A stretch of 64,000 nt of DNA from Selaginella moellendorffii. Its lineage: Eukaryota > Plantae > Lycopodiophyta. Location of the stretch: NCBI RefSeq assembly GCF_000143415.4, contig NW_003314324.1:410011-474010 (forward strand), given 5' to 3'. The translations under genes were made by a program, and so were the position numbers. The notes beneath the pieces are model-generated. The model ran no database searches. It was given only the letters and a program-made list of their open reading frames with translations, and was not told where the DNA came from. Of the stretch, positions 14,506-46,862 are shown piece by piece (position 1 is the stretch's first letter; each line of letters opens with the position of its first letter).

Positions 14506-14580
14506 CAACTTCATCATTGAACGTTTGTGGTTTCAATTCTTACTTTTGGAGGTTTGTTCTTTACATTCTTTGTTTATTAC

Positions 14581-16302
14581 ATGTCCATTGCAGCAGTAAA
14601 GCCCGCCACAGCATTCAAGGTCGAGATAGCCACTGACACTGCTGCAAGGGTGCGCTTTGCATCAAACGGGAAGATCAAGATGTATGGCAAGCTTTCGAGA
14701 GTCAAGGATGCTCGGCAAGTTTTCGATCGCATGTGTGACAAGGACTCGCTGTCTTGGTTCTTGATGCTAGCTGTGTATGCCCAAAATGGTCATATGGAAG
14801 AGGCCAAGCTGATGTTTTCCCAAATGCCGGAGAGGAGTTTGATTTCTTTCAACATGATGATATCTTCGCTTGGTCGGTGTGGATGTGTACAAGAAGCTTA
14901 CAAAATCTTTAACAACATGCCTCACAGGGATTTAGTGTCTTGGAACGCCGTGATCTCTGCATATGGCCAAAATGGGTATATCAACGAGACGGTTCAGGTG
15001 TTTGATGCCATGCCCGAGAGAGATATGATCTCTTGGACGGTTGTTTTAACGTTGCATGCGAATAATAGAAATTTGGAAGAAGCTAAGAACATCTTTGAGA
15101 AAATGCCAGAAAGAGATCTAGCTGCTTGGAACTGTATGCTGAATGCATATTCCCAAAGCGGGTATCCGCAGGAGGCAAGGCGTGTGTTTTATTCTATGCC
15201 TCAGAGAAGTCTCATTTCCTGGACTGTGATGTTAAACCTCTCTGCCGTAAATTCTAGTTTACAAGAAACAAAGAACATATTCGAAGCCATTCCAGAAAAT
15301 AATCTAGTTTCGTGTACGTCAATGATTTCTGCATATGCCCAATCAGGGTATCACTTGGAAGCTAAATCACTATTTGATAGAATGCCATGCTGGAACTTGG
15401 TAACATGGACCGCAATGCTGGCAGCATGTGTGCGCGCTGGCAGCATCTTCATGGCCGAGGACATCTTTAAAAAAATGCCATTCAAGAATCCAGTCGCATG
15501 CAACGCCATGCTAGCCGGATATGCCCACGCTGGCAAAGTTGAGCAGGCAAAGTGTATATTTGACAAAATGCCATGTTGGAGTTTAGTATCGTGGAGTTCA
15601 CTGCTGTATGTCTACGCAGGATCAAGAGATATGGACTTGACACGACGATTTTTCGATAAAATGCCATACCAGCAGCTAGTTTCCTGGAACACCATGCTTG
15701 ATGCTTATGCCCAAAACAGGTATATGGCAGAAGCAAGGGTCATGTTCAATGCAATGGTGGAGAAGGACGTAATTTCTTGGACTATAATGCTTGCTGGCTA
15801 TGGCCTTAGTGGCCAGAGTTCACTTGCAAGAAAAACTTTTGCCCAGATGCCAGGGAAGAATGAAGTTTCTTGGGATGCAATGCTCAGTGCATGCACCCAA
15901 GCAGGGGATTCGATTTCTGTGTTTGAATTGTTTCACACTATGCAGATGGCCGGCATTTACAACCAAGTTGGATTTGTCTCCGCTCTCAATGCTCACGGCC
16001 AAGTTGGCAGTGTTAAATGTGCTAGAAGTTGCTTTGTTTCGATGGCTTTTGACTGTGGCATTCAGCCATGTCACCAGCATTACTCCTGCATAATCGATGG
16101 CTTGGCAAGAGCTGGTTACATTGACAATGCAAGAGAACTCATCGGAAACATGCCATTTGTTCCCACTTCTTTGGATTGGCTGTGCCTTTTAGCTGCATGT
16201 CGGAGCCTCGAGTGTGGAACCTGCGTATCAAAATGGGTGTCTGGAATTGCGAGCAGCAGAGCTATGTATTCTCTCCTGGCAAATGTATGGGCTTGGCATT
16301 GA
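14581..16302 (+). CDS. PLS-class PPR protein (PPR1) with short 31-aa motifs and an E-like C-terminus; candidate organellar RNA-editing factor
   Basis: Repeats of DLVSWNAMISAYAQxG...A..IF..MP and C-terminal HYSCIIDGLARAG...MPFVPxxxDWxCLLAAC. No DYW domain. The start codon is uncertain. Confidence 0.85.
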   Translation: MSIAAVKPATAFKVEIATDTAARVRFASNGKIKMYGKLSRVKDARQVFDRMCDKDSLSWFLMLAVYAQNGHMEEAKLMFSQMPERSLISFNMMISSLGRCGCVQEAYKIFNNMPHRDLVSWNAVISAYGQNGYINETVQVFDAMPERDMISWTVVLTLHANNRNLEEAKNIFEKMPERDLAAWNCMLNAYSQSGYPQEARRVFYSMPQRSLISWTVMLNLSAVNSSLQETKNIFEAIPENNLVSCTSMISAYAQSGYHLEAKSLFDRMPCWNLVTWTAMLAACVRAGSIFMAEDIFKKMPFKNPVACNAMLAGYAHAGKVEQAKCIFDKMPCWSLVSWSSLLYVYAGSRDMDLTRRFFDKMPYQQLVSWNTMLDAYAQNRYMAEARVMFNAMVEKDVISWTIMLAGYGLSGQSSLARKTFAQMPGKNEVSWDAMLSACTQAGDSISVFELFHTMQMAGIYNQVGFVSALNAHGQVGSVKCARSCFVSMAFDCGIQPCHQHYSCIIDGLARAGYIDNARELIGNMPFVPTSLDWLCLLAACRSLECGTCVSKWVSGIASSRAMYSLLANVWAWH

Positions 16303-16977
16303 TAGAATCTAAGGAAAAAATAAACTGCTGCCTGGATTATGTTGTCAAATTGCTCGAGAATTTAAGACTAGAAGGACCAATTGCGTTTCATGCTTGATAA
16401 ATTCAAATATTGACAAAATATTTGTCTATATAACACCCAACATTCCCAGGATCTGAGCGTGGACCTCCTGGACCAAATCACCAGAGGCTCTGAGAGATCG
16501 CGAGCAACTTCAATCAGACAGATACCTTGCAATACCTAGTGATTGAGGTGTGTGGAAAGTGCAGCAGGCGAATGATGATCCGCCTGAGGGAATGTGTTTG
16601 ATTCTATGCGAATGTTCTCAAAACTTTTCATGGAAAACTAGAAAACGATCAATGTTTGATGCCTGACGACGATACTTGCTGCCATGATAGGTACTAACAG
16701 AGCAAATATTCCTTTGCGCCACGATGCTCACACGAAGCTCTTCCTAGCGGTGGAGATGGAACGCGATGCCCTCGTCAAGGCAACGTGGGGCTGCCTTCTT
16801 TGCAATCGACACTCCAGCCGACTCGATCCAACGCCTTGGACTCCTCCAAATCGTGCGGTGCTTCGGTATCCGGCCTAGTCTCGCTGCACCAAACGACGAT
16901 TAAGTCAATGCAAATGCTACGTCCATATCACCCATGTTTTGTATACACTTCTTTACAGATTGCGCTTCACAGGAACC

Positions 16978-18733
16978 TTAGACAAGCACGCTTGATTCCT
17001 CTGGCAACAGCACGCAACGTAGCTCCGACCTCTCAAACTCCTTGAAGGATCGGTCACCAGTGATGTAGAACGCAAAGGCGGGAGGGGACTTGTCAAGGAT
17101 GTACATCACGACTCCAAGAGGGAGGCAGAGCATGGAGACGTGTACCGCAGCGAGTGCTGCCACTAGCCAAGCGAAAAGAAAGCCGTAGCTTGGGTAAAGC
17201 GTCCAGGCCTTCCCGAGTACTGGGAGCGCCATGGCGAAGACCGAGTCAGAGATACCTTCCCTGCCAAAGAAATAGAAGAATATTAGAGAGCTTTGATTGC
17301 TCAAAACTGTCACACCTGTAATCGGATGTCTGGAGATATGGATCTACAACCGCTGAAACGCCTCCCGTGGAGCATCGAAACCAACTAAAGCCATTCTCCA
17401 CGACACGGAAAGCATCGGCCTCTTTCACCCGGGGGCCGGTTGCTCCCCAAGTTTCGGCTGGTTGGAGCATGATATCAATCCTAAAAACATTCACCAGAAA
17501 CTTAGAGAACACCATCATAACTGCGCTCTACCTCTTTTTCCCGGCCTGGCGCATCAGGTCTGGGAACTCGAAATCGTAACAAATAGCTCCTCCAATCCGG
17601 CCGAGCTCGGTCTCGATGACAGGAAGAATGGGATCCCCTGGAGTTCCATACCACTCCACGAATGGAACCAAGTGGGATTTCCTGTAGCTAAATCCAATGG
17701 AGCCATCGGGAAGAACGAGGTCGAAATAGTTCCCGACTCTCCCGGTGCTCGCGTCCTTGTACTCGTAAGTGATGCCAACGTAGGCGCCGTGCTGGGAAGC
17801 GATCTGTCCGGCTTTGAATTGGAGAGAATCCCTCTCCTGTTTGAGGTCGAGTTTCACCGCAGCCTCGGACCAGAGGACCAATCGATCGCCGGCTCGGAGG
17901 CGCTGGTTCGTCCTGTTGAGCATCACATCCATGTCCTCGTAGAAGAGGACCTTGCCCAGGACGCAAGAGACCGGCACTGTTTTCTTCATCGTGAGGGCGA
18001 TGTCCTTCTGGAAGAAATCGCCCGAGAAAATGGAGACCCTGGCGCTGCCGTAGAACAAGATCGAGAGAGCAATGGCTCCAAACGCCAGGGAGTGGCCGCG
18101 ATGCAGCTGCATAGCACGCTTCTTGTCAGATTTCTCCATCTTGGAAAGATTCTCGTCGAGAACGGCCCTGTCGTGGAGAGTCGCCGAGAACCACGCCATG
18201 AGAAATGCGATCCCATCGATCCCCCACACGCCGGCGCTCATCACCAGAGGCAAGATTGTAACCTGGGAAACGGCGGGATGGAGGAAGGAGCCGACGCCGC
18301 CGAATCGATTCCACAACAACCACGCCGTGGTCCAGATCGACGCGAATACCAGCGGCTGGGACGTTCTTGCTCGGTCAAAACGCTTCCTGTAGCCGATGCT
18401 TGCAAGAAATGGGAGGAGAAGAAACATCCACAGCGCCAGTGCCCAGATTATTCCCACAATTGGCACGCTGCTGGCGGTGGAGTTGTCCGGGCTCACCTTT
18501 CCCGGGAAGAATGCCAAGAATGCCAGGCTCGCGGCAGTGGTGTGGAGGATGAGCGCCAGGAGAATTGTGAGCACCGCAGAGCTCCATGAGCAAGAATTGT
18601 GCGAAATCCCTGATTTGTGGAAGAAATGCAAGAGGAAAAATGGTTGGAGCCAAGAACAAATTGCAACAGATTGGAAACCCGAGAAGAAAGTGCAGGCCAC
18701 CGAGAGAATGACCAGCAGTGCCACCTTCGTCAT
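16978..18733 (-). CDS. Apolipoprotein N-acyltransferase (Lnt)-like membrane nitrilase-family protein, about 549 aa, 3 exons (18733-17532, 17480-17316, 17260-16978)
   Basis: Multiple N-terminal TM segments. Catalytic motifs VLWSE, YRKSHLVPFVE and GAICYD. Two GT-AG introns (51 and 55 nt) join in frame to RVVENG..RCSTGGVSAVVDP and TLYPSYG plus a final TM segment. Confidence 0.85.
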
Positions 18734-19569
18734 GTCTCTTGGTGCTTGTTTGAATGTAGGTGGTAATTTATATTCTTATTATATTCATCAAAATGAAATT
18801 ATTTATAAAGTGATATGAAGGTTTGTATATTAATATCAGCGTAGTGGGATTTTGGTAGCTGTCAGATTAATTTCAATCTGGACCACTTGCTTTTATATAT
18901 AATTTAGGATTTTTGGGCTAATTGATATGCACATTTTTTGCATTCCCTTTACATATAAAAAAGCATTCACATTGAGGGCACTTTTAATTATCCCTAACGA
19001 GTGCTTGGATTTAAGATTTTAGTTTAGATCTAGCTTTTTCATTTTTTAAATTTAGGTTTTTCCATTTCCTTTCTTTTGTTATTTCCTTTCAGGATTTTGG
19101 TTTACATCTAGCCTTTTGCATTGTTTAGATAAACCATTTCTTTCTAGCTTTTTGTCATTTCTGTTTTTTTGCTCTTTCTTTTTCATTCATCTTCATAGTA
19201 GATCAGCAATCTCTTTCTTTGACTCTGGAGTAGTAGTTAGTACAATTGCTTAATGCTATGCACTTGCAATTGAATAACCAAACTTAGTTGATGGCGGCGT
19301 TTATGGCACGTGGTACAACTCCTCTTGCTCTTGGTGCCAATCTGTGAGACACAAAATCCCTAGGCCCCAAAGTGGAGCCGGAAGGGCGCCACATGGTAGT
19401 GGCCGAAGCGAGAGCCAAACGAGCGTAACATGTTTGGACCAAAAGCTCCGACTTGAAAAGTCAAGAGCGGGAGTGAAACTCCCAACGAAGTGCTTGAGGA
19501 ACGAGCACGAAGTGAGCAAAAGGCGAGGCTCCAAAAAGGGACCCAAAAGGACCAACACATGACACGTGG

Positions 19570-20090
19570 GAGTGTCCGAGATGGAGTCCGAGGTGGACCC
19601 GAGATGGACCCGAGCTGGAGTCCGAAGTGGAGTCCGAGGTGGACCCGAGATGGACCCGAGTTGGAGTCCGAAGTGGAGTCCGAGATGGAGTCCGAGGTGG
19701 ACCCGAGATGGACCCGAGCTGGAGTCCGAAGTGGAGTCCGAGATGGACCCGAGATGGAGTCCAAGATGGAGTCCGAGGTGGACCCGAGATGGACCCGAAA
19801 TGGAGTCCGAGATGGAGTCCGAGATGGACCCGAGATGGAGTCCGAGATGGAGTCCGAGATGGACCCGAGATGGACCCGAGATGGAGTCCGAGATGGAGTC
19901 CGAGATGGAGTCCGAGATGGAGTCCGAAGTCGAGACCGAGACTGGGACCGAGACCGAGACCGAGACCGAGATCGGGACCGAGACCGAGACCGAGGCCGAG
20001 GCCGAGACCGAGCCCGAGCCCGAGTCCGAGTCCGAATCCGAGTCCGAGTCCGAGTCCGAGTCCGAGTCCGAGTCTGAGTCCGAGTCCGGA
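19570..20090. repeat. LTR-internal minisatellite (11/12-bp GAGATGGAGTCC/GAGATGGACCC units, then GAGACC/GAGTCC hexamers)
   Basis: Directly visible tandem array. Confidence 0.95.
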
Positions 20091-23000
20091 GCCTGAGAGG
20101 GTGAAAGCCCAAAGCGTTCGTCTCCCAGACCCTGGGGGGTTTGGTGAGCTCCAAAAGTATAGTAGGGGGAGGACTGCAGTGGAGCCAGTTTGGCCAGGAA
20201 AGGCCAGTTTGGCCCAGGAAGGCCGGACCCAGTGTTGGGTGATGAGATGCCCACTGGGAAGTCCAAGACTAGAGTGAACACGGACCGACAAGCGGGGTAG
20301 CTTGGTGAAGTGTTCAAGAGCCGACTCTAGTTCCCCCGGGAGATCGTCTGGCCGATGCTCCCAGTCCAAGTGTGGGTGGCACTACCTACTTGGATACCAA
20401 GTGTGGCTCAACGGAACCTCGCTCTAAGCCCATGGCTAGAGCACCTAAAGGCGAAAGGCGGGGAGAGTACCCAGGTGGCTCGCGTAAGGCCACGGTGTTC
20501 CGAAATGTTGTCCCAAAGGCCTAGACTGTGGAAAGGAAGAGGAGCAGTCCTCTGGGGTAGTGACCAAGGACACAGTCGTGTGGTGAGGAAGTCCCAGAGG
20601 ACCATGGGACTTAGTGGTCGGGCCTGTGGGCCTCGATCCAGTGGCAGTGTTGGCAAACACGGCCAGGGGCAAAAAGGGACTTGGTAGGAATTGACAAAGG
20701 GACTTTGGGGAAGGCAATTCCCCAGGTCTGTGGGCATCCTAAGGATGCTAAGGAGTGGGTCTAGGATGACCACTCGTGGACCGATAGCCCAGTCTTGGAG
20801 AGACGGGATGGTGATGCAAGTGGTATTGGACCACTAGTGCAGCAAAGGTGAATGGGCATGGCCTTAGCGTAACGGGCCGAGATGTCAGTGGTACCTTTGG
20901 GTGTCGGTCTTGGGACCGGACACGTGGAGCACTTGGACCAGGTGCAAGTGTTGAGTGGCATGGATGCCATTCTTGGGGCTAACGAGTCCCAAGTCCTGAA
21001 TTGGACTTAAGGAGGTTGTGAGTGAGACTCCTCCAAGTGGTCGAAGGTGTGGTTAAGTGACTAAAGTAGAATGGAAAAATTAGTCGCTTACAATTTGTAT
21101 CGGGTCGGAGGTGTGGTTAAGTGACTAAAGTAGAATGGAAAAATTAGTCCCTTACAATTTGGTATCGGAGCTGTTCCTTAGTCCGACTTTTATTGGTGCT
21201 CAAGTATATCACCACTAGTGTTGGTATCGGAAGGTCCGAGGAGTGGGCCTATCCTTGAGGAGTAGCAAGTCTGGAGGACATGGCTCTCCATTACAGTTCA
21301 TGTGTGAACTTGTAGATGAGTGGTGGATAGAAAAGGGCCAATAATGGAACGACTTTGGGATCTTGGGAATAGTGCAAGGTTTTCCTCATATAGTTGAGGT
21401 TGGTGCTCATGAATGTGAGACCAAAGGTAATGACCGTGGAAGGTCAAATACGGAAGAGGACTCAAGTCCTTGAAATGGTAGCCGGGGCTACCTCTAATAA
21501 ATGCTGGAACAACCCAAGGAGTTGGGGGTGTATTAAGTGGATGAGTTGGTATTCTCATCACATGGACAAGCAGTCCTAAGGGGCAAAGGTTGCCCCCAGA
21601 GAACAAAATCAAGTGTCGGAGTAACACTTGTGAAAATAGTCCTTTTGAGTAGGACCGGAATGCAAGAAGTGTATTCCAGTGAGCTAGTGCCTCACAAGTA
21701 GGACCTTACGGGTTGGTGGATTAACCAAGTCCAAAACTGCTAGACGACTCAAGTAGAGTCAAGGGATGGTCCTAAAAGGACTGATGGAAGCATTTGGACT
21801 GAGGTGCGTTATACCCCACAAAGGATGGGGGGGGATCATAGGATCCAAGGATGAGAACAGAGAGTATCTCATCGATGGCAATGTGCCATGCTAAAGTTAT
21901 GGGAAAGGTGTTCCCAGAAGAAAACAACTTTGACATAAAGTTGTGTGTGACCTCTATGGGGCAGTGCTAACAGATGGTTGGCATGAGAAAGAGCGGTGTT
22001 GGTCTTGGCAAAGACTTAGACACGAAGGGAAATGTCATAGAGGTAGGCTCGTGGAGCCGATGGTGTGGAGACACCAAATGTGCCAAGGTGTGATACCTTG
22101 AGGCTATGTTGGTGGGTTCATGAGAACCCCTTGCCAAAGGAATCCCAATGGAAATGGGAATGGCATAGCCTAAGCTGCAAAGCATGCAGTTGGAGTGTGG
22201 TGACCCAGATAGTGATGGAGGTGTGAAAGCACCAAGCAATGAGTTGTAGGACTTGACAACTATGAGGCAACTAAGCAAGAGGTGCAAAATAACTGATTAA
22301 ACGGGTAGAAGGTAGCTACCCAAGACTTCTAGTATAGGGAAGTCGGATATACCCTTACGGGGGATAAGTTTCTTATGTTGCGATATAGTAAGTCAATGTC
22401 ATAAAAGGAAATACTCATTGTCAAGAAAGCCATCATTGGGACACCCGAACACTCTAGAACACCAGAAGGTGGTGTTTGATATCGCGAGGGCAATGGATAA
22501 AGCCCAAGGGACTAAGTCCCTAGCGAATGATGGATAGAAGGTGCTATCCAAATGTCCAAGGTTGCAGAGACAGGAGAGGACTGTCTACCCAAGTTGGACA
22601 AAGCCAAAAATGGAATTTTGGCAAGGCTAGTGATGGGCATGTAAAGGCCCATAAGCAAAAAATGTAATCCCAGTGTGTGGGATTATAAGCTGAGCATACC
22701 CGGATTGAGGAACCACTCCCTGGGCTATTGGGTAGGTTCATCCCTAAGAATACTTGCTAAGGCATGATAGAAAGTGCAAAGCTATCCTCCTGGTCTGGAG
22801 GAGAATGACCGAAGGAAAGGTGTGAAGCCAAAGGCAAGTAGTATTGGGATGGAACTGAACCATAGAAATCAAAGGACATATCCAACAGTGGTTATGAAAG
22901 TTGGGAGTGGAGAAGCAAGAGGGTGCTCGAGGATGTTGTTGCTAGCAACCGTGATGCCATGGAGAGTCTAAAATATGGAATTGTCCATGTTAGACTATAT

Positions 23001-25307
23001 GGCAACTATAAAGCTTGCGAAAGGGGAGGCCTTAGCAAGCTGAGGGACAGAGTTCCTTCAAGGTTCCCAAAGACGATTCTAGGTAGCGTAGTACCTAGAA
23101 AGGCCAAGTGTAAATGGTTCATGGAACACGCGAAATCAGAGTGGCGCAGCAGAAGCGTGGTCTTGAAGCTTGCCATGAGGCAAGGTTATCAAGGTTAGGG
23201 AAGTAGTTCCCGAGTGTTCAAAGAGAGGGCTTTGAACGAAAGTCGATGGTCAAGGACTTTCACGCTTATGCAGGAACCATGTTACAATGGTCGGAGGACT
23301 TGCCAAGTGAGATTGGCACGTCGGGGGAACAAAGACCCTAGTTGAAGGTGATAACTTCAAAAGGGGTGGGCCATGGGGCCGAGCATGGAGGAGTCCATGC
23401 ATGATCATAGACATGTCAAGTGAGAGGACTTGGCAGTGTGGAGGAACTAGGTTCCTAAGCTGTGATCTGTAGCGCGCTTTAAAAATAGGTTGGTGCACCG
23501 GCGTGGGGAGTCACGCTAGGCATCTAGTGTGATGCCGTCCGTAGATGCATATACGGAGGTTGGGTTCGAGTCCCGACCCTCTAGTGCTTGGGTTCGAGTC
23601 CCAAATCACTAGGGCGTGGTGATGGTTTGGAATATGAGGACACTCATATTTCGGTGGTCATGGACTCTCAGTGGGGAGACTGGTTTGGGCACACCGCCAA
23701 GTGAGGGATGCCTCGGAGTCGTGATGCACGGTTAGATTGCTTAGTGTGAAAGCTCGGCATATCTAACTTGAACGCTTTGGTGCAAGTGGCACCAAGGTCT
23801 TGGTGAGTGAGATGGGGACACCTAATCTCAGTTGCTATGAACCCTTGGCCGTAAGGGCTAGCTTGGGTGCACCGCCAAGTGTGGGGGATGCCCCCGGGGT
23901 TATAGTCAACAACTTGGAGGTCTAGAAGACCAAGTACCTCTTGGCAACTCTGTTAAGGTGCCAAGGTGAGATCACTAGGTGATCTTATGGCCAAATAAGG
24001 ACAAGGTCCTTGGTTGGCTAAGGAATGAAGTTCCTGGTTCAAAATGTTGAAATTGAACTGTTTAAGATGGTGTGGCTTGGTCGTGATGACCAAGTGGGAA
24101 GAGCACCTAAGGGAAATAAACTATGTCCGTCCGATGGCATAGTGAGTCCGAGGAAAGTAGTCTCTATAAAAGACCCATGGGAGGGTCACGAAGTTGGGCC
24201 ATGGATAGAGCCCATAGCAGAATATGCTAAAGAGACATACTAGGGGTGAACATCCTCCGGACTTGGCAAAGAAGAGTCTTTGCTATGGAACCGAAAGGAT
24301 ACCTCAAAAATGGAGGTAGCGATCCGATGTTGCTGGGTGCAACAATCAAGGATAGGAGCAAAGGACTAGTGGCCAAAGTTTGGGCCATGGAATTTAATGG
24401 AAGGGATCCAAATGGCAAAGTTAGCCAAGGAACACTAATGTGTTCGATGCTAACAGCTTGTGGGAAAGGAAGCGGACTTTCAAGGACGGATTCCTAAGTG
24501 CTCCAATTTGGCGAAGTAAAGGCTCCAAGTGAGGGAGCGGTAAGGTAGCCAAATGGTAGGGCCATGGACAGCCCTAGCACAAAGTATGATAAATGGAACT
24601 TAGTGCCCAAGGTGGCACGAAATAGAAGAGAGGATGATGGTGCCCTCGAATAATGAACTTCCTAGGATAGGGAAGTGGAGTTGCACAATCTGTGCAATGC
24701 AAGGTGTTGGAGACACCTAGAAAATTGACTTCCAAAAAGTCAAAAGAGTAAAAGTTCCAAGGTGCAAACATTCAATAGATGAAAATTGAGACTACTCGAG
24801 AAGGAGTAGTATGATTGACTTAGAGAAGGGTCTCTAAGAGGTTTAGCAAGAACTAAACCAATAAAAGGGGAGAACCATTACATGTGGTCCAATCAGTCTC
24901 TAAGTTGGAGAGACTACGCTCCTTAAAGGATGGACAAGGCATGGTGAGCCTTTGATGTCAAACCATAGACAAAGATTGGCTAGGTGCCAAGGATGGAAAT
25001 GGTAACACTTGTGGGTGTTACTTTATGAAAGGGTTTACCGTTCGATGAGGACATCGAACTTCGTCTATGGGTGGTGGAGTTGTGAGACACAAAATCCCTA
25101 GGCCCCAAAGAAGAGCCAGAAGGGCGCCACATGGTAGTGGCCGAAGCGAGAGCCAAACGAGCGTAACATGTTTGGACCAAAAGCTCCGACTTGAAAAGTC
25201 AAGAGCGGGAGTGAAACTCCCAACGAAGTGCTTGAGGAACGAGCACGAAGTGAGCAAAAGGCGAGGCTCCAAAAAGGGACCCAAAAGGACCAACACATGA
25301 CATGTGG

Positions 25308-25840
25308 GAGTGTCCGAGATGGAGTCCGAGGTGGACCCGAGATGGACCCGAGCTGGAGTCCGAAGTGGAGTCCGAGGTGGACCCGAGATGGACCCGAGTT
25401 GGAGTCCGAAGTGGAGTCCGAGATGGAGTCCGAGGTGGACCCGAGATGGACCCGAGCTGGAGTCCGAAGTGGAGTCCGAGATGGACCCGAGATGGAGTCC
25501 GAGATGGAGTTCGAGGTGGACCCGAGATGGACCCGAAATGGAGTCCGAGATGGAGTCCGAGATGGACCCGAGATGGAGTCCGAGATGGAGTCCGAGATGG
25601 ACCCGAGATGGACCCGAGATGGAGTCCGAGATGGAGTCCGAGATGGAGTCCGAGATGGAGTCCGAGATGGAGTCCAAAGTCGAGACCGAGACTGGGACCG
25701 AGACCGAGACCGAGACCGAGATCGGGACCGAGACCGAGACCGAGGCCGAGGCCGAGACCGAGCCCGAGCCCGAGTCCGAGTCCGAATCCGAGTCCGAGTC
25801 CGAGTCCGAGTCCGAGTCCGAGTCTGAGTCCGAGTCCGGA
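25308..25840. repeat. Same minisatellite in the 3' LTR, with one extra 12-bp unit
   Basis: Directly visible; compare with 19570-20090. Confidence 0.95.
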
Positions 25841-28800
25841 GCCTGAGAGGGTGAAAGCCCAAAGCGTTCGTCTCCCAGACCCTGGGGGGTTTGGTGAGCT
25901 CCAAAAGTATAGTAGGGGGAGGACTGCAGTGGAGCCAGTTTGGCCAGGAAAGGCCAGTTTGGCCCAGGAAGGCCGGACCCAGTGTTGGGTGATGAGATGC
26001 CCACTGGGAAGTCCAAGACTAGAGTGAACACGGACCGACAAGCGGGGTAGCTTGGTGAAGTGTTCAAGAGCCGGCTCTAGTTCCCCCGGGAGATCGTCTG
26101 GCCGATGCTCCCAGTCCAAGTGTGGGTGGCACTACCTACTTGGATACCAGGTGTGGCTCAACGGAACCTCGCTCTAAGCCCATGGCTAGAGCACCTAAAG
26201 GCGAAAGGCGGGGAGAGTACCCAGGTGGCTCGCGTAAGGCCACGGTGTTCCGAAATGTTGTCCCAAAGGCCTAGACTGTGGAAAGGAAGAGGAGCAGTCC
26301 TCTGGGGTAGTGACCAAGGACACAATCGTGTGGTGAGGAAGTCCCAGAGGACCATGGGACTTAGTGGTCGGGCCTGTGGGCCTCGATCCAGTGGCAGTGT
26401 TGGCAAACACGGCCAGGGGCAAAAAGGGACTTGGTAGGAATTGACAAAGGGACTTTGGGGAAGGCAATTCCCCAAGTCTGTGGGCATCCTAAGGATGCTA
26501 AGGAGTGGGTCTAGGATGACCACTCGTGGACCGATAGCCCAGTCTTGGAGAGACGGGATGGTGATGCAAGTGGTATTGGACCACTAGTGCAGCAAAGGTG
26601 AATGGGCATGGCCTTAGCGTAACGGGCTGAGATGTCAGTGGTACCTTTGGGTGTCGGTCTTGGGACCGGACACGTGGAGCACTTGGACCAGGTGCAAGTG
26701 TTGAGTGGCATGGATGCCATTCTTGGGGCTAACGAGTCCCAAGTCCTGAATTGGACTTAAGGAGGTTGTGAGTGAGACTCCTCCAAGTGGTCGAAGGTGT
26801 GGTTAAGTGACTAAAGTAGAATGGAAAAATTAGTCGCTTACACAATCCTCGCGTTCAACTAGAGTTCTTTCACGGGAATCCTGGGGATGATGTGTACTAT
26901 TGGTTCGATCACTTCACGATGATTATCACATATCATTCTTAGGATGATGCTCAACATTTACATGAGTTTCCCATGTGTCTCCAAGGGACGGTGTTTTAGT
27001 GGTACAAAAGTTTGAGCATAGCCACTTGTGGGGATTGGAATGTTCTCCCGGACATCTTCAAATGCGCCTTCGGACATGTCGATAATTGTGATGATGCCTT
27101 CCAACAATTGCATCATCTTCGCCAAAGGCCATCTAAATCAGTGATGCAATTTGGCATTTGTTTCCGAAGTTTTTTACTTCGTGTGGAGCTAAATATGTCA
27201 GAGCGGATCAAGTTAGGAATGTTGTGGCCAGCACTTCAACAAGATCTTGTCGGACTTGTGCATACATTTGCTCCTGCCACCTTTGACGATGCCCTTCACT
27301 TGGCACAACTTTATGAGATGTCGCCTCTTCCACTTCTCACTACCCATCCTTCCGCTCCTTTTCCTGCAGGCGATGGTCTTATTTTAATGGAGGTTGATGC
27401 TGCTGCTGCTTGAGTCCAAGGACAAGGGCAAGGACGTGGTCGTGGCTGTGACATTCGCTGTTAGGCATGTGATGATGTTGGGCACACTTATCAGCGTTGT
27501 CAGTGTTTTCCGGATTGGCAACATCCATTTCCTGGGTGGAGACCTTGGTATCAACAACGTTTTGTTGGTGCTGCTGCAGTGGAAAGTCTAGACACCATGA
27601 TGCATCAGAGAAACGAGGAGTTGTACGAGTAACGGAGGGACCTTGAGCGAATAAGTCAGTGACCCTTCCATCTTTCTTTTGGGAGTATCATCAAGGGGTT
27701 CATTCGGCACCGATTCATCCAGTGTTTACTTTCCAGGCTTGTTTTTATAACAAGAGGTCTTCTATTATTCTCTTCATGTTGGTTGATATAGGTTTGAGTT
27801 TATTTTCTATTGCTCGACTTGTTGCCACATGTTGCCATTTACACTTGCGTCGTGTGGCAGAACCAATTTTCATTCTTTCTGGCAATAGTTGTACACATGT
27901 ATGTGCACGGAATGAGGTGGACCTAGTTGTGCATGTGGGCGATCTCGAGCTTGAGTTGTAGTCCTTGCGAGTGGTGTCAAGTCAATCTTTTGACTTCATC
28001 CTTGGTATGGATTGGTTGTAACGCAATCATGCTAAGTGTGACTTTGAGGCTTCTCCCCCTTGTCTCATACTTCCTTATGTTTCATCCATTCCTCTCATTT
28101 TTATACCTCTTTGTCCCTTTACTTCTACCTCTGCTTCAATTACTTTTGTCCCCCCATTATTTCCTCCTACGTTTTTTTCTTGTTTTGCTCTTATCTTTTC
28201 TGATCCCTCCGACAGTCTTTGTGTTGCACCGGTTGACTGGCTCATGAAGGAGTATTCTAATCTCTTTGACTTTGACTTATTGTCTGGGGCCAAGATTGCC
28301 ACACGTCATCGGATTTCAATCGAGGATGCTTGTCCAATCAAGGTTCCCGTTCGTTGTCAGTCACCCAAATAGATCAAAATTTTATGTACAAATGTTAAGG
28401 AGATGTTGGAGAAGGGTGTTATTCAGAAGTCGCGGAGTCCTTGGGCATGTGAACCTCATCTTGTGACGAAGCTTGATGGGAGTATTCATTTTTGCATCGA
28501 CTATCGTCCGTTAAATGAAGTGATGATCCCGGATATGTACCCTCTTCCTCACACTGCTGATCTCTTGGATCATCTAGGGCAAAGTCGTTGGTTCACCAAG
28601 TTAGATCTTGCTTCTGGGTACCGGCAAGTACTGATAGCCGAAGAAGATATTCCTAAGACTACTTTTCATACACCATTTGGATTGTACGATTTCTTGGTGA
28701 TGCCATTTGGTTTAAATAATGCTTCAGCAGCTTTTTAGCAGATGATGGATGAGGTTTTTTGTGATATACCAGAGGTGACTGCTGACTTCATTGATAATGT

Positions 28801-33177: not shown

Positions 33178-34968
33178 ATGAATAGAAACTCTAACATTCA
33201 TTTTATTCAATCCTGCAAAAGCCTTTATGAAGCAAAAGAGATTTACTTGAATCTTAAAAGGAATCATCCACTTGCTGATGATTCCTTCCTCAGCAACAAA
33301 CTCATTGAGATGTTTGGCAAATATGGAAGCCCACGAGAGGCACGCCAAATCTTTGATACCATCAAACACAAAGACTCCTTTTCGTGGGCTTTCATGTTTC
33401 AAGCTTACGCCCAAAACTCCCATCTTAAACATGCAAAAGAGATCTTCGACAAAATGCCGCAAAAGGATGTCTTTGCATGGACATCCATGCTCTTGGCATA
33501 TGCCCGAACTGGGCATGTTTTCAATGCCCAAAAAACATTTGATGAGATGCCGCAACACAGCCTTCTCTCATGGAACACAATCCTGTCAGTACATGCACAT
33601 AGCTGGGATCTAAAAAATGCTCAGAGGATTATCTCCGGGATGCCCGAGTATGATCTCGTGTCTTGGAATTCCATTCTTGCGGCATATGCCCGGAACGGGC
33701 ATGTAGAGGGAGCGAAACGTGTTTTCGATTGTATGGAGGCTCGTGACCTTGTGTCATGGACGACAATCTTGGTTGCCTTGTCTCAGGGCGGAGATTTGCA
33801 CGGAGCAAAGCTTTTGTTTGATGCAATGCCGCAGCACGATCTCGTCGCCTGGACCGCGATGCTTGGCGCGTACGCACTGAACGAGGATGTCGATTCGGCA
33901 CAAAGGATTTTCCGCGAGATGCCTGAGATAGATCTCGTTTCGTGCAACACTGTGATGCGATGCTGCCGTGATGCTAGACAATCAAAGCTTATATTTGACT
34001 CCATGCCGCAGAGAGCTCTCTCGTCGTGGACAACAATGCTCGCTGTTCTTGCCAAGAACAGCCCCGGGGAGGAAACCAAGAACTTTTTCTATCAAATGCC
34101 GGAGCTTGATCTTACTTCCTGTACGATAATGTTGCTCTCACAACCCTCAGACTTGGAGCTTGTGAAGGCCACCTTTGATCAAATGCCGCAGCGAGACTTG
34201 TGCTCTTGGAACTCTATTCTTTCGGCGTATGCTCAATCAGGGCATTGTGACTTTTCTTTAAGACTCTTTAAAGAGATGCCCGAAATGGATATGGTTTCAT
34301 GGAACACAATGTTAAATGCGTTTGTTCTAACTAGCAAACTACGTGAAGCTGCTTTACTCTTTCATAGCATGCTAGAACGCAACGTTGTGACCTGGGATGC
34401 TTTGATATCTGCATTTTCCCGAGAAGGCCATATTGTATACGCAAGGAAACTTTTTGATACAGCCCCTGACAGAGACCAAATCTTGTGGAGCTCCATGATT
34501 GCTTCATATGCACAAGTAAGCACCACTGCCAGCAAGGCCTTTCATCTCCTCAACGAAATGCAGGCTGTCGATTCCCCAAACACATCGTGCTTCGCATCCA
34601 TCCTGGCCGCAAACAGCCACAAAGGCAGCTTTCAAGCGGGAAAGAGCTTCTTCGCTTCCATGGTTGTGGATCACGCCATTGAGCCCACAAGGCAGCACTA
34701 CAGTTGCATGGTAGATCTCTTGAGCCGAGCCGGCCACCTTCACGACGCCAAAGATCTAATCTTAAGCATGCCGTTCGTTCCCAGTGCTCTCGAGTGGACG
34801 TGCCTTCTCGGAGCATGCAAGAGCCACGAGGATTATAACAATCTTAGACTGGGAGACGATGTAGTGAGATCTGTAATGGACGTAACCGACGGAACCCCCA
34901 AGACACCCTATGCTTTACTAGCAAACGTCTACACAAGCTCCCAAACAAAAAATCCACACTATATGTGA
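33178..34968 (+). CDS. PLS-class PPR protein (PPR2), E-like C-terminus, no DYW
   Basis: Tandem short PPR motifs, and HYSCMVDLLSRAG...MPFVPSALEWTCLLGACKSH...PYALLANVY. Confidence 0.85.
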   Translation: MNRNSNIHFIQSCKSLYEAKEIYLNLKRNHPLADDSFLSNKLIEMFGKYGSPREARQIFDTIKHKDSFSWAFMFQAYAQNSHLKHAKEIFDKMPQKDVFAWTSMLLAYARTGHVFNAQKTFDEMPQHSLLSWNTILSVHAHSWDLKNAQRIISGMPEYDLVSWNSILAAYARNGHVEGAKRVFDCMEARDLVSWTTILVALSQGGDLHGAKLLFDAMPQHDLVAWTAMLGAYALNEDVDSAQRIFREMPEIDLVSCNTVMRCCRDARQSKLIFDSMPQRALSSWTTMLAVLAKNSPGEETKNFFYQMPELDLTSCTIMLLSQPSDLELVKATFDQMPQRDLCSWNSILSAYAQSGHCDFSLRLFKEMPEMDMVSWNTMLNAFVLTSKLREAALLFHSMLERNVVTWDALISAFSREGHIVYARKLFDTAPDRDQILWSSMIASYAQVSTTASKAFHLLNEMQAVDSPNTSCFASILAANSHKGSFQAGKSFFASMVVDHAIEPTRQHYSCMVDLLSRAGHLHDAKDLILSMPFVPSALEWTCLLGACKSHEDYNNLRLGDDVVRSVMDVTDGTPKTPYALLANVYTSSQTKNPHYM

Positions 34969-39282: not shown

Positions 39283-39374
39283 GTATGAAGCTTTGAGAAA
39301 CAACTTCATCATTGAACGTTGTGGTTTTAATCGTTACTTTTGGAGGTTTGTTCTTTACATTCTTTGTTTGTTGC

Positions 39375-40800
39375 ATGTCCATTGCAGCAGTAAAGCCCGC
39401 CACAGCATTCAAGGTCGAAATAGCCACTGACACTCCTGCAAGGGTGCGCTTTGCATCAAACGGGAAGATCAAGATGTATGGCAAGCTTTCAAGAGTCAAG
39501 GATGCTCGGCAAGTTTTAGATCGCATGCGTAACAAGGACTCGGTGTCTTGGTTCTTGATGCTAGCTGTCTATGCACAAAATGGTCATATGGAAGAGGCCA
39601 AGCTGATGTTTTCCCAAATGCCGGAGAAGAGTTTGATTTCTTTCAACATGATGTTATCTTGGTTTGGTCGGTGTGGATGTGTACAAGAAGCTTACAAAAT
39701 CTTTAACAACATGCCTCACAGGGATTTAGTGTCTTGGAACGCCGTGATCTCTGCATATGCCCACAGTGGGTATATCAACGAGACGGTTCAGGTGTTTGAT
39801 GCCATGCCTGAGAGAGATATGATCTCTTGGACGGTGGTTTTAACGTTGCATGCGAATAATAGAAATTTGGAAGAAGCTAAGAACATCTTTGAGAAAATGC
39901 CAGAAAGAGATCTAGCTGCTTGGAACTGTATGCTGAATGCATATTCCCAAAGCGGGTATCCGCAGGAGGCAAGGCGTGTGTTTTATTCTATGCCTCAGAG
40001 AAGTCTCATTTCCTGGACTGTGATGTTAAACCTTTCTGCCGTAAATTCTAGTTACAAGAAACAAAGAGTATATTCGAAGCCATTCCAGAAATTGATCTAG
40101 TTTCGTGTACGTCAATGATTTCTGCATATGCCCAATCAGGGCATCTATTGGAAGCTAAATTACTATTTGATAGAATGCCATGCTGGAACTTGGTAACATG
40201 GACCGCGATGCTGGCAGCATGTGTGCACGCTGGCAGCATCTTCATGGCCGAGGACATCTTTCAAAAAATGCCATTCAAGAATCCAGTAGCATGCAACGCC
40301 ATGCTAGCCGGATATGCCCACGCTGGCAAAGTTGAGCAGGCAAAGTGTATATTTGACAAAATGCCATGTTGGAGTTTAGTATCGTGGAGTTCACTGCTGT
40401 ATGTCTACGCAGGATCAAGAGATATGGACTTGACACGACGATTTTTCGATAAAATGCCATACCAGCAGCTAGTTTCTTGGAACACCATGCTTGATGCTTA
40501 TGCCCAAAACGGGTATATGGCAGAAGCAAGGGTCATGTTCAATGCAATGGTGGAGAAGGACGTAATTTCTTGGACTATAATGCTTGCTGGCTATGGCCTT
40601 AGTGGCCAGAGTTCACTTGCAAGAAAAACTTTTGCCCAGATGCCAGGGAAGAATGAAGTTTCTTGGGATGCAATGCTCACTGCATGTACCCAAGCAGGGG
40701 ATTCGGTTTCTGTGTTTCAGTTGTTTCACACTATGCATATGACCGGCATTTACAACCAAGTTGGATTTGTCTCCGCTCTCAATGCTCACGGCCAAGTTGG
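39375..40800 (+). pseudogene. PPR1 copy 2, frameshifted and 3'-truncated
   Basis: 1-nt deletion at about 40052 (AGTTAC vs AGTTTAC). Homology to copy 1 ends at 40800. Confidence 0.85.
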
Positions 40801-41364: not shown

Positions 41365-42111
41365 CATCATGAGGGCGATGTCCTTCTGGAAGAAATCCCC
41401 CGAGAAAATGGAGACCCTGGCGCTGCCGTAGAACAGGATCGAGAGAGCAATGGCTCCAAACGCCAGGGAGTGGCCGCGATGCAGCTGCGTAGCACGCTTC
41501 TTGTCGGATTTCTCCATCTTGGAAAGATTCTCGTCGAGAACGGCCCTGTCGTGGAGAATCGCCGAGAACCACGCCATGAGGAATGCGATCCCATCGATCC
41601 CCCACACGCCGGCGCTCATCACCAGCGGCAAGATTGTAACCTGGGAAACGGCGGGATGGAGGAAGGAGCCGACGCCGCCGAATCGATTCCACAACAACCA
41701 CGCCGTGGTCCACATCGACGCGAATACCAGCGGCTGGGACGTTCTTGCTCGGTCAAAACGCTTCCTGTAGCCGATGCTTGCAAGAAATGGGAGGAGAAGA
41801 AACATCCACAGCGCCAGTGCCCAGATTATTCCTACAATTGGCACGCTGCTGGCCTTGGAGTTGTCCGGGCTCACCTTTCCCGGGAAGAATGCCAAGAATG
41901 CCAGGCTCGCGGCAGTGGTGTGGAGGATGAGCGCCAGGAGAATTGTGAAAACCGCAGAGCTCCATGAGCAAGAATTGTGCGAAATCCCTGATTTGTGGAA
42001 GAAATGCAAGAGGAAAAATGGTTGGAGCCAAGTACAAATTGCAACAGATTGGAAACCAGGGAAGAAAGTGCACGCCACCGAGAGAATGACCAACAGTGCC
42101 ACCTTCCTCAT
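41365..42111 (-). pseudogene. Lnt-like copy 2 (TM half only)
   Basis: Near-identical to 17987-18733 and cut by the LTR. The nitrilase domain is absent. Confidence 0.85.
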
Positions 42112-42156
42112 GTCTCTTGGTGCTTGTTTGAATGTAGGTGGTAATTTATATTCTTA

Positions 42157-42423
42157 AGTTGCATGGTAGATCTCTTGAGCCGAGCCGGCCACCTTCACGA
42201 CGCCAAAGATCTAATCTTAAGCATGCCGTTCGTTCCCAGTGCTCTCGAGTGGACGTGCCTCCTCGGAGCATGCAAGAGCCACGAGGATTATAACAGTCTT
42301 AGACTGGGAGACGATGTAGTGAGATCTGTAATGGACGTAACCGACGCAACTCCCAAGACACCCTATGCTTTACTAGCGAACGTCTACACAAGCTCCCAAA
42401 CAAAAAATCCACACTATATGTAA
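42157..42423 (+). pseudogene. PPR2 3' fragment
   Basis: Matches 34702-34968 and is joined directly to the Lnt-like upstream region (equivalent of 18778). Confidence 0.85.
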
Positions 42424-43575: not shown

Positions 43576-45015
43576 TTACGATTTGCGTCGGGTTCTCCTT
43601 TGACGGGCGCCCTCGCCTTCCTTCTCAATCTCGTTGCCTGTCGCGTCGTCCTCCGCCTTGTCCTTGGAATCGTCCGGGCTGGAGATGTCTTCCTTCTTGG
43701 ACTTCTCTACAGTCACCTGCGCAAGACAAACAACCATGAGAATCCAAAACTAGCGCAACTCTATTGCTAATTGTACCTTCGTCTTCTTGGGGGGCGATTT
43801 CTTGCCACCAAAAAGAATCTTAAACAGCGTGACCACCACGACGAGCGGGATGAAAGCTATGGCGCTCAAAGAAATGGTTGGGAACTTCTCGGCCTTCTAG
43901 ATCCTGTGTGTCACAAACGAAAAGAAAGTAAGAATACGAGACAAAGTCCATGTTTTACTTACAAGAATCTTTTCCTTCTGTGACGCCAAAGCCGGGATGT
44001 CGGCAACCTTGCGCAGGTACTCAAACATCTTTGCCTGAAAAGATTCAAGGTCGTCACACACACACACAAGAAAGAAAACAAAAGACAGACAAAGGAAAAG
44101 TACCTGGATGCCGTCAGGACTCGGAGTCGCTTCTTCAATTTTTTGCTTCTCCTTCTCAGCCTCGTACTTGGGCTTCCATTTCGTCTCCCTGTACTCTGCT
44201 GCCACAGCCTCGTCGGTCGCCACCAGGATGTTGTCAAAAAGAATGCCGTCCTGCATCGTCCAGATCTCGATCCCTATCGCCGAGATCGGCTCTAGATCCG
44301 GCCTGTCCAACTCGAAGTACTCCGGGTTCGGTATTTGCTTCGGAGCCCAGATCCCCTTGTAAGCCGGGCTGTCGATCATCGGAGGATACCACTTCCTCTT
44401 GTAGTCCGGGTTCCTCTTCATGGGCCTCTTCCATTCTCCACACCCAGACGCTTCCTCACACTTTGGGTTGCTGATCTTCGGGGGCTCCCACTCGCCATCC
44501 TCCTCGTCGTCCCAGTCCGCGGGCTTGCTAGCTTCCGGATCGTCAACCTCGTCCGGCTCGTTGTCCAGCCAGTCATCGGGCTTGACCGCCTCCGCGTCCT
44601 CGATCTCCAGTGGAGCGTCCTCGTCCCAATCCTCGGGCTTGGTCGCTTCCGGATCGGGGATCTTCGCCCGCTCGTCCCAGTCCTCGGGCTTCTTGTCGTC
44701 GGGATCGGGGATGGTCTTGGGCGGGATCACGGCCGGCTCGAAGTCGCTCGAGAGGAGGTCGACGCTCTTCTCCTCCTTGCCGCCGACGAGGATCTTGAGC
44801 GTGTTGTTCGGGTAGATCACTGCCGTGTAGACGTGAGAGAGCTTATCAGCCACTGGCGATGGCGGGTACTTGAGGTGATGCTCGATGTGCTTGTCGGATT
44901 TGGGACCCTTGTGCTTGTAGATGAATTGCACCTTGTTGGTGGTACCACATTTGTCTGGCCCAAACATGATTGAGTAGGGGGATTCATTACTGAAATTGTC
45001 GGGCGTCCATTGCAA
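43576..45015 (-). pseudogene. CNX: Calnexin copy 2, 5'-truncated and frameshifted before the TM segment
   Basis: Near-identical to 36070-37515. Small deletion at about 43898 (TTCTAGATC vs TTCTCCAGAAGATC). Confidence 0.8.
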
Positions 45016-45566
45016 GAGAAGGAACTTGAGATAGGCGATGCCACACTCTAATCCTTTCTGGAATTATAGTTTAAACCTTAGTCAAACACAGAATAGAACA
45101 TAAGTGGGGAGTTAAATTATGCTTTAAGTTAGTCAACCATGTTTAACTTACCCATTATCCTTATTATACATTTGGAATTCATCAAAAACTAAAAAACTCA
45201 AGGGTAATTATGTGGTGAAAAACTTAGATTTTGTATTTTTACATCAGATTATAACATTGGTATTGGAGCCTAATTTAATTCTCATGGCTGACAAATATAG
45301 AAGGAAAACCAAGGTTAGTAAACCTTAAGAGAAGTACCATGGTGACTAAAGGATAACTTAAATATGATTGTAGATGATAATTTCTAAAGGATTGTTAAGC
45401 ACCAAATTAAGGTAATAGAATAGAAAAAAGGCTTATAAACAAAACCCCCTTTTGTAAAAGAATGCATGCTTTAGGATTTTACTTAAAAATTAATCTTTAA
45501 AACAATTACAAAAACTTACTAAATATAAAATGACACTAGATTGCAAATTTAGATGCAAGAATAATA

Positions 45567-46202
45567 AAGTGCATATTTGACAAAATGCCATGTTAAAGTT
45601 TAGTATTGTGGAGTTCATTATTGTATGTCTACACAGGATCAAGAGATATGGACTTTGACACGACGATTTTTCGATAAAATGCCATACCAACAGCTAGTTT
45701 CTTGGAACACCATGCTTGATGCTTATGCCCAAAATGGGTATATGGTAGAAGCAAGGGTCATGTTCAATGCAATGGTGGAGAAAGACATAATTTCTTGGAC
45801 TAGAATGCTTGCTGCCTCACTTGCAAGAAAAACTTTTGCCCAGATGCCAGGGAAGAATGAAGTTTCTGCAGATGGCCGGCATTTACAACCAATTTGGATT
45901 TGTCTCCGCCCTCAATGCTCACGGCCAAGTTGGCAGTGTTGCTTTGTTTCGATGGCTTTTGACTGTGGCATTCAGCCATGTCACCAGCATTACTCCTGCA
46001 TAATCGATGGCCTGGCATTGACAATGCAAGAGAACTCATCGGAAACATGCCATTTGTTCCCACTTCTTTGAATTGGCTGTGCCTTTTAGCTGCATGTTGG
46101 AGCCTCGAGTGTGGAACCTGCATATCAAAATGGGTGTCTGGACTTGCGAGCAGCAGAGCTATGTATCCTCTCCTGGCAAATGTATGGGCTTGGCATTGTT
46201 AG
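45567..46202 (+). pseudogene. PPR1 copy 3, 3' relic
   Basis: Matches 15550-16302 with several deletions. Confidence 0.8.
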
Positions 46203-46862
46203 AATCTAAGGAAAAAAAAACTGCTGCCTAGATTATGTTGTCAAATTACTTGAGAATTTAAGACTATGCGTTTCATGCTTGATAAATTCAAATATTGACA
46301 AAATGGGAAAAAAACAAATCATTTGTCTATATAACACCCAACATTCCCAGGATCTGAGCGTGGAGCTCCTGGACCAAATCACTAGAGGCTCTGAGAGATC
46401 GCGAGCAACTTCAATCAGACAGATACCTTGCAATACCTAGTGATTGAGGTGTGTGGAAAGTGCAGCAGGCGAAATTTGTGTTTGATGATCTGCCTAAGGG
46501 AATGTGTTTGATTCTATTTGAATGTTCTCAAAACTCTTCATGGAAAACTAGAAAACGATCAATGTTTGATGTCTGACGACGATACTTGCTGCCATGATAG
46601 GTACTAACAAAGCAAATATTCCTTTGCGCCACGATGTTCACACGAAGCTCTTCGGAGCGATGGAGATGGAACGCGATGCCCTTGTCATGGCAGTGTGGGG
46701 CTGCCTTCTTTTGCAATCGACACTCCAGCCGACTCGATCCATCGCCTTGGACTCCTCCAAATCGTGCGGTAGTCTTGCTGCACCAAACGACGATTAAGTC
46801 AATGCAAGTGCTACGTCCATATCACCCATGTTTTGTATTACAGATTGGGCTTCACAGGAATC

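Follow-up and report, generated by a model that had tools for sequence, protein, structure and literature searches.

We analysed a 64,000-nucleotide stretch of the Selaginella moellendorffii genome (contig NW_003314324.1, positions 410,011 to 474,010 of the forward strand; the window), in which a gene resembling that of the bacterial apolipoprotein N-acyltransferase (Lnt) lies on the minus strand at 16978-18733. Read from the sequence, it consists of three exons separated by two GT..AG introns and encodes 549 amino acids (aa). A pentatricopeptide repeat (PPR) gene lies tail to tail with it, and two truncated copies of the Lnt-like gene, here called B and C, lie further along the window. Our overall reading, to which we assign a probability of roughly 0.8, is that 16978-18733 is a functional, expressed nuclear Selaginella gene for an Lnt-superfamily enzyme with eight transmembrane (TM) segments, that it belongs to a eukaryotic Lnt-like clade, and that it was vertically inherited and locally amplified, with decay.

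Exon 1 (17532-18733, minus strand, as are all parts of the gene) encodes residues 1-400 and two bases of codon 401, covering TM1-TM7 and the first half of the nitrilase-like domain. The catalytic codons lie in this exon, namely those of E290 (17864-17866), K352 (17678-17680), E360 (17654-17656) and C385 (17579-17581). Intron 1 (17481-17531, 51 nt) falls in phase 2 in the codon of Arg401 and intron 2 (17261-17315, 55 nt) in phase 2 in that of Arg456, so that each splits an AG|G arginine codon. Between them, exon 2 (17316-17480) encodes residues 402-455 plus the split codons and carries the FRVVENG and TGGVSAVVDP motifs; this region matched the C-terminal part of the NCBIfam lnt model with an E value of 0.004. 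Exon 3 (16978-17260) encodes residues 457-549 and the stop, comprising the end of the nitrilase domain, TM8 (residues 484-501) and a 48-aa tail which is predicted to be cytoplasmic.

The exons were searched singly. A word search with exon 1 returned a database protein of 549 aa, 'uncharacterized protein LOC112351564 [Selaginella moellendorffii]' (P0001), which was used as the full-length reference for later protein analyses. The exon translations of 401, 54 and 93 aa corresponded to P0001 residues 1-401, 402-455 and 457-549, showing that our 549-aa model is the annotated NCBI model. A spliced open reading frame of about this length, with two introns, had been proposed in an earlier reading of the sequence without database searches (the sequence-only reading), and it is borne out by this model and by the two junctions described next.

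Parts of the window were found in 20 public runs, none of them recorded as RNA, so that their kind was only guessed. Contigs from four runs, each from a different study (X1, X5, X6 and X7), were aligned to 16500-19300. Removal of intron 2 was seen in contigs of X1 and X7, in which 17259 is joined to 17315 and exactly 17260/61-17314/15 is left out, a gap of 55 nt that reads CT..AC on the plus strand. As for intron 1, the contigs beginning at 17531 (in X1, X5 and X7) were found to have 12 unaligned letters, CATGATATCAAT, which are identical to 17468-17479; these letters are the start of exon 2, indicating that intron 1 is spliced out too. The X1 junction contigs had zero mismatches to the 16978-18733 copy, and X1 coverage ended at the gene borders, as RNA would. 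X6 included unspliced pieces as well. Both introns are thus removed in RNA-like contigs from two to three studies, and the gene is apparently expressed.

To place the product in a family, P0001 was compared with curated profiles. Pfam CN_hydrolase (PF00795) matched residues 310-450 with 52.6 bits against a gathering cutoff of 23.2, with the E-K-C triad present, whereas Pfam LNT_N (PF20154) gave no match in P0001 at E <= 0.1. Of the two profile matches that the sequence-only reading had proposed to look for, the first was therefore found and the second was not. Weak LNT_N matches, under the cutoff, were seen in two relatives, P0003 (E 0.012) and P0004 (E 0.0032). The best NCBIfam model was lnt itself (TIGR00546; E 1.7e-22), at 80.1 bits, which is under the equivalog cutoff of 132.9; a canonical Lnt (P0163) scored 308.7 bits on the same model.

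An AlphaFold2 model built on 105 relatives was of high quality (pLDDT 93.2, pTM 0.92) and placed helices at residues 2-20, 24-40, 50-71, 87-118, 125-144, 172-198, 201-236 and 484-501 around an alpha-beta-beta-alpha domain at about 240-480. When this model was searched against the PDB with Foldseek, the 24 best matches were all Lnt, with about 540 columns aligned, E values from 2e-16 to 1e-13 and TM-scores of 0.59-0.74 (top match E 2e-16, TM-score 0.66/0.73); soluble nitrilases ranked after Lnt and matched in the C-domain only. Bacterial Lnt clusters in the ESM Atlas reached TM-scores of 0.80/0.86. A profile of the family, which takes in some bacterial Lnt-like rows, aligned end-to-end with Lnt chains (E 5.5e-52), while soluble nitrilases scored 1e-19 or worse. 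The family profile was needed for this, as a single-sequence search of the PDB returned soluble nitrilases only and no Lnt chain at E <= 1. The gene product is a polytopic membrane enzyme of the Lnt superfamily and not an Lnt equivalog.

The motifs expected of such an enzyme were all present: LWSE (with E290), YRKSHLVPFVE (K352 and E360), AICYD (C385), FRVVENG, TGGVSAVVDP and WTLYPSYG. Residues were mapped by aligning P0001 with E. coli K-12 Lnt from the annotated genome. In this alignment E. coli E267 corresponds to E290, K335 to K352, E343 to E360, C387 to C385, Y388 to Y386 and E389 to D387; the roles of these E. coli residues in Lnt have been described (PMC5500888). Among the 105 relatives E290 and K352 are invariant and C385 is nearly so (at least 90%). 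The sequence-only reading, in describing a multi-TM protein with the nitrilase triad and Lnt-type motifs, agrees with these results and with the eight helices of the model, and the structural comparison with E. coli Lnt that it had called for gave a full-length fold match with aligned catalytic residues.

The substrate portal was found to differ from that of canonical Lnt. P353, F358 and M362 on Arm 3 of E. coli Lnt are important for function (PMC5500888). Arm 3, a loop of about 40 residues between beta5 and beta6 in Lnt, is about 19 residues shorter in the family: the P. aeruginosa and E. coli Lnt chains carry a 19-residue insertion relative to the family profile just after the equivalent of E343, and the same gap appears when P0001 is aligned with E. 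coli Lnt. Of the two residues after the nucleophile that are essential in Lnt, Tyr388 is kept (Y386) and E389 is replaced by D387, the family consensus here being ICFD. No Trp occurs at or near the column of W237, which lies on Arm 7 of Lnt, in a segment that is poorly aligned. Taken together with the splicing evidence, the gene is real, spliced and probably active, its active site being intact as judged from its sequence.

An exhaustive HMMER search returned 3393 proteins with E <= 1e-3, of which 94 had E <= 1e-30, and the named proteins among the best matches were all eukaryotic. Streptophyte members came from Closterium, four species of Sphagnum, Calypogeia fissa and Klebsormidium nitens, together with the eukprot model SM000170S02695; chlorophyte members from Chromochloris zofingiensis and Volvox carteri; and fungal members from Dichotomocladium, Basidiobolus, Mortierella, Ambispora and Entrophospora. 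Further members were found in Balamuthia, Paulinella and MMETSP protists, and the ESM Atlas added a Basidiomycota cluster. One metagenomic member (P0048) is encoded on a 105-kb contig whose neighboring genes include CCB1, a ubiquitin-conjugating enzyme (UQ_con) and ELP6, which points to an alga. A word-based search with alignment A1 produced no new relatives, and word-based searches with Selaginella or Sphagnum queries found no fern or seed-plant proteins, which suggests that the family was lost in ferns and seed plants. No publication on an Lnt-like protein of a plant or another eukaryote turned up in our literature search; the phytoplankton paper that was found concerned the lnt of Prochlorococcus. 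Two annotations of members (P0202 and P0201) deserve comment. The Klebsormidium nitens protein is named 'Fibrillarin and related nucleolar RNA-binding proteins' in NCBI and UniRef, probably a mis-annotation, and SM000170S02695 also has the OTCase domains PF00185 and PF02729, so that it is probably a fused gene model.

Phylogenetic trees were constructed in IQ-TREE under LG+C20 and rooted on canonical Lnt; two such trees were made, plus a quick tree of 105 rows. A eukaryote-only clade was recovered with support of 100/97 and 98/92 in the two trees. Within it, a streptophyte group containing Selaginella, Sphagnum, Calypogeia, Klebsormidium, Closterium and SM000170S02695 (100/99 and 91/93) was sister to a chlorophyte-containing group (100/98), their joint node receiving 99/93 and 80/89. 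The gene thus belongs to an uncharacterised eukaryotic Lnt-like clade, whose named members are from early-diverging fungi, Amoebozoa, Rhizaria, chlorophytes, charophytes, a liverwort, Sphagnum and Selaginella.

Intron positions gave a second line of evidence. The Sphagnum orthologue (L005:3001-6461, GCA_963970345.1) has four introns, of which the last two match those of Selaginella in codon and phase, and a ~60-aa insertion in the TM6-TM7 loop. The homologous phase-2 splits are AGKLG|VDIM in Sphagnum and AGKKR|IDIM in Selaginella, and LEYR|EALT and SDYR|EGIS; the Sphagnum positions were read from codons, at a locus that differs slightly from the query protein. Introns common to both plants indicate that the intron-bearing gene is older than the split between bryophytes and vascular plants. 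On the combined evidence of trees and introns, the gene was passed down vertically through the green lineage to Selaginella. The sequence-only reading had named, as an outcome that would refute it, ordinary vertical inheritance within an already characterised plant nitrilase clade; the inheritance is indeed vertical, but the family is one in which no characterised member was found.

How the family first entered eukaryotes is a separate question. The next clade outward from the eukaryotes is bacterial, with two of its members (P0053 and P0197) encoded on contigs carrying restriction-modification, PadR and toxin-antitoxin genes. The nearest ESM Atlas clusters were Chloroflexota, and a genome match (L002) came from Ktedonobacteraceae. 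The bacterial Lnt-like clade also scores under the lnt cutoff and has a short Arm 3, indicating that eukaryotic and bacterial Lnt-like proteins together form a sister subfamily to canonical Lnt. On two independent contigs (that of P0053, and L006:6295-8530) a PadR-family regulator (PF03551 and PF10400) lies directly upstream of the bacterial Lnt-like gene, once with a 4-nt overlap. In the gene neighborhoods examined, neither lgt nor lspA was found near the bacterial Lnt-like genes. Together these features suggest that the bacterial sister subfamily has a regulated accessory function and is not a housekeeping Lnt.

Such a sister group raises the possibility that the eukaryotic family derives from one ancient transfer of a Chloroflexota-like Lnt-like gene into an early eukaryote, or spread between supergroups by transfer from one eukaryote to another, being absent from the last eukaryotic common ancestor. 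The proximity of the Chloroflexota and Ktedonobacteraceae sequences fits this, as do the low lnt scores and short Arm 3 on the bacterial side, the patchy distribution among eukaryotes and the failure of the fungi to form a monophyletic group in our trees. Loss could equally give such patchiness, however, the deep nodes within the eukaryote clade are poorly resolved, and the root was set by the long-branched canonical Lnt outgroup alone. We consider such an origin plausible, at somewhat less than even odds; descent within the green lineage would be vertical either way.

The substrates of Lnt are diacylglyceryl-Cys lipoproteins that Lgt and LspA have produced, to which it transfers the sn-1 acyl chain of a phospholipid, and both of its termini are cytoplasmic. 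The Selaginella protein begins with TM1, lacks a presequence and has K/R-rich loops that match the cytoplasmic loops of Lnt, and for these reasons we infer that its topology is N-in and that the catalytic domain lies on the lumenal or extracellular face of a membrane of the secretory pathway. Oriented as in Lnt, the catalytic domain would thus face the lumen or the outside. Cys385, activated by Glu290 and with Lys352 and Glu360 stabilising the oxyanion, would then form a thioester with an acyl chain taken from a membrane glycerophospholipid. In the second half of this ping-pong reaction the chain would be transferred to an amine of another membrane-embedded substrate, which would thereby be N-acylated, or else to water. 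A diacylglyceryl-Cys lipoprotein of the bacterial type is an improbable acceptor; the Arm 3 loop with the residues important in E. coli is missing. We consider it an even bet that the enzyme carries out ping-pong acyl transfer from membrane phospholipid to an amine acceptor by way of a Cys385 thioester.

Pressing this further, the clade might represent a lumen-facing transacylase, independent of coenzyme A and kept in mucoromycete fungi, amoebae, green algae, bryophytes and lycophytes, that moves a phospholipid acyl chain through a Cys thioester to the amine of a membrane lipid or a lipid-anchored molecule. Possible products would be N-acyl-phosphatidylethanolamine, N-acyl-serine lipids, an acylated sphingoid base, or an acylated amine of a glycosylphosphatidylinositol or a protein. 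This is a speculative proposal and we hold it to be doubtful in this specific form.

The main alternative to acyl transfer is plain hydrolysis, with the enzyme serving either as a membrane amidase that cleaves N-acyl lipids or as a phospholipase A1 acting by hydrolysis of an acyl-enzyme. Most branches of the CN-hydrolase superfamily are hydrolases, which favors this idea. Elements important for the second substrate in Lnt, namely Arm 3 and, in a poorly aligned segment, the Trp at the W237 position, are missing here, and the thioester of Lnt itself deacylates by hydrolysis when no second substrate is present (PMC5500888). Against it, the family has kept the whole Lnt membrane domain and the domain interface, which in Lnt serve to deliver both lipidic substrates to the active site. 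Either chemistry would use the same E-K-E-C set, and the sequence therefore cannot decide between them. We think a hydrolase unlikely on balance.

Another rival is that the Selaginella lineage recently acquired a bacterial lnt by horizontal transfer, and that this gene then gained introns and was domesticated. This was in effect what the sequence-only reading had put forward in calling the gene bacterial-type and possibly horizontally acquired. It would account for the best curated family match being bacterial lnt (TIGR00546, E 1.7e-22), for bacterial Lnt being the closest solved structures, and for a patchy distribution in land plants with no seed-plant match in word-based searches. The trees contradict it, as Selaginella is nested among streptophytes in a eukaryote-only clade, and an approximately unbiased (AU) test rejected a grouping of Selaginella with bacteria (delta lnL 53, p 0.001). 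Both introns are moreover shared with Sphagnum in codon and phase, and the nearest bacterial proteins are only 24-31% identical. A motif scan of 185,579 prokaryote genomes gave two weak loci only, using motifs specific to the eukaryotic clade, so that closer bacteria may still exist. The claim of a bacterial, horizontally acquired gene was accordingly abandoned, and a recent transfer is very improbable.

Equally hard to sustain is the proposal that the protein is a true Lnt whose substrates in the plant are diacylglyceryl-Cys lipoproteins, which it would N-acylate, for instance in an organelle that has an Lgt/Lsp pathway of the bacterial type. The fold and the catalytic residues are as in Lnt, but the score of 80.1 bits falls short of the equivalog cutoff of 132.9, and Arm 3 with P353, F358 and M362 is absent. 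There is no N-terminal transit peptide, TM1 beginning at residue 2, and members of the family are found in fungi and amoebae too, organisms without a plastid. Plants are not known to have an Lgt/Lsp pathway that would supply a bacterial-type lipoprotein substrate. Contamination of the assembly by bacterial or fungal DNA, for which the bacterial family name and nothing else speaks, can be set aside given the spliceosomal introns common to Sphagnum, the flanking plant PPR genes duplicated together with the Lnt-like gene, the record of P0001 on a 1.15-Mb contig and the presence of the gene in many independent Selaginella runs.

Several observations weigh against our overall reading of an expressed, vertically inherited gene for an active enzyme. 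The evidence for splicing comes from contigs, not reads, in runs that are only guessed to be RNA. Some of the contigs placed on the 16978-18733 gene derive from truncated copy B, with loose ends at 18778 and 17987 that correspond to private flanks of that copy (42157-42186 and the sequence below 41365). Support for the green-lineage node falls to 80/89 in the second tree, and the stem leading to Selaginella is long, at 0.8-1.0 changes per site, which indicates fast evolution; the trees place Selaginella as sister to the other streptophytes and not inside the land plants. The group tested by the AU test was picked after the tree was seen. Most relatives are unnamed metagenome proteins, the description 'eukaryote-only' resting on about 25 labelled rows, and the absence from ferns and seed plants comes from word-based searches alone. 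Finally, we infer the activity, donor, acceptor and location for the whole eukaryotic clade.

Self-comparison of the window showed that the Lnt-like gene belongs to a duplicated unit made up of a PPR gene and the Lnt-like gene, tail to tail. The triplication noted in the sequence-only reading was recovered as copies B and C. Copy B (41365-42156, minus strand) is truncated and encodes residues 1-249, the membrane domain, only, running into unrelated sequence at 41365; its DNA is 97.5% identical to 17987-18778. Contigs of X6 and X7 run into the private flanks of copy B, with a 30-mer after 18778 equal to 42157-42186 and a 255-nt loose end at 17987 equal to the sequence below 41365, and this membrane-domain-only copy may be transcribed. 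The same 30-mer (42157-42186) also occurs at 34702-34731.

Copy C (46866-47982, minus strand) is truncated too, its residues 12-359 being joined, after a frame shift, to the last ~29 codons. Its aligned blocks, 46957-48665 and 45566-46951, are 87-88% identical. A 590-nt deletion, equivalent to 17067-17656, has removed E360, C385, exon 2, both introns and most of exon 3 (residues ~360-520). Judged from their sequences, copies B and C cannot be catalytic, as the catalytic Cys is gone from both. Values of dN/dS between the copies were 0.25-0.38, which indicates constraint during most of their divergence. Paralogs are also present elsewhere in the genome, a full-length protein of 545 aa (P0002) and one of 373 aa (P0003). 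The statement that only one copy remains intact is thus correct within the window and does not extend to the whole genome, in which P0002 lies at another locus. The gene was amplified in tandem with its PPR neighbor, and two of the three copies in the window have decayed by deletion.

The PPR-repeat gene of the intact unit lies at 14527-16302 on the plus strand, tail to tail with the Lnt-like gene, and the extra PPR copies at 39301-40800 and 45566-46071 are truncated or rearranged. Two further features were observed in the window. An open reading frame of 372 aa at 43897-45015 (minus strand) has repeated KPEDWD/DPE.KP.DW motifs and resembles an exon for the P-domain of calnexin or calreticulin. 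A 1.67-kb repeat with 98.6% identity occurs at 19343-21000 and 25081-26750; it contains internally repetitive sequence of low complexity, several reading frames of which are open, with runs resembling SD, RT and GL dipeptides.

Lnt is regarded as a bacterial enzyme and an antibiotic target, and descriptions of the branch of the nitrilase superfamily to which it belongs generally treat that branch as prokaryotic. The present family is a sister subfamily that keeps the complete architecture of Lnt and an intact active site, while its substrate portal is remodelled. It is conserved and spliced in eukaryotes, early land plants among them, and apparently expressed there; no lipoprotein pathway known in these organisms could provide the bacterial substrate. 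Finding its substrate could reveal an undescribed step of lipid or protein N-acylation in eukaryotic secretory membranes. Should the doubtful transacylase proposal prove true, it would mean a eukaryotic N-acylation pathway with no described enzyme of the Lnt fold, and the loss in seed plants would signal a change in the biology of membrane lipids. With regard to horizontal transfer this is a negative result that is of use: a plant gene that looks 'bacterial' was in fact inherited vertically, with heavy loss. It also cautions that the name of the best-annotated family is poor ground for calling a gene horizontally acquired.

Compared with known systems, the protein differs from the soluble CN-hydrolases of plants and other eukaryotes (NIT1-4, N-carbamoylputrescine amidase, Nit2/omega-amidase and beta-ureidopropionase), which lack a membrane domain and match residues ~225-440 only. 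Membership of a characterised soluble plant nitrilase, NLP or omega-amidase group was rejected on the basis of the 240-aa N-terminal membrane domain and TM8, and of scores far weaker than those with Lnt. The bacterial Lnt-like subfamily, probably mostly of Chloroflexota and represented by metagenomic proteins (P0053, P0007, P0010, P0070, P0093/P0197 and P0204), forms the sister clade in our trees. It shares the short Arm 3, an ICFD-type nucleophile elbow and lnt scores of 52-119 bits, under the cutoff, and differs in being ~26-31% identical, in keeping a detectable LNT_N domain and in being intronless.

Bacterial Lnt itself (E. coli b0657; PDB 5N6H, 5XHQ and 5VRG; P. aeruginosa 5N6M) is only 15-18% identical to P0001, which scores under the curated lnt cutoff and has no significant LNT_N match. 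The Selaginella protein has an Arm 3 that is shorter by ~19 residues and lacks P353, F358 and M362, no Trp aligned with W237 (in a poorly aligned segment), Asp in place of E389 and an extra C-terminal tail of ~48 aa, and its gene is eukaryotic and intron-bearing. What the two have in common is the eight TM segments with a nitrilase-fold domain between TM7 and TM8, the catalytic Glu, Lys and Cys, the second Glu and the Tyr that follows the Cys, all kept in P0001, and the L1 'xYSQ' segment, which is partly kept.

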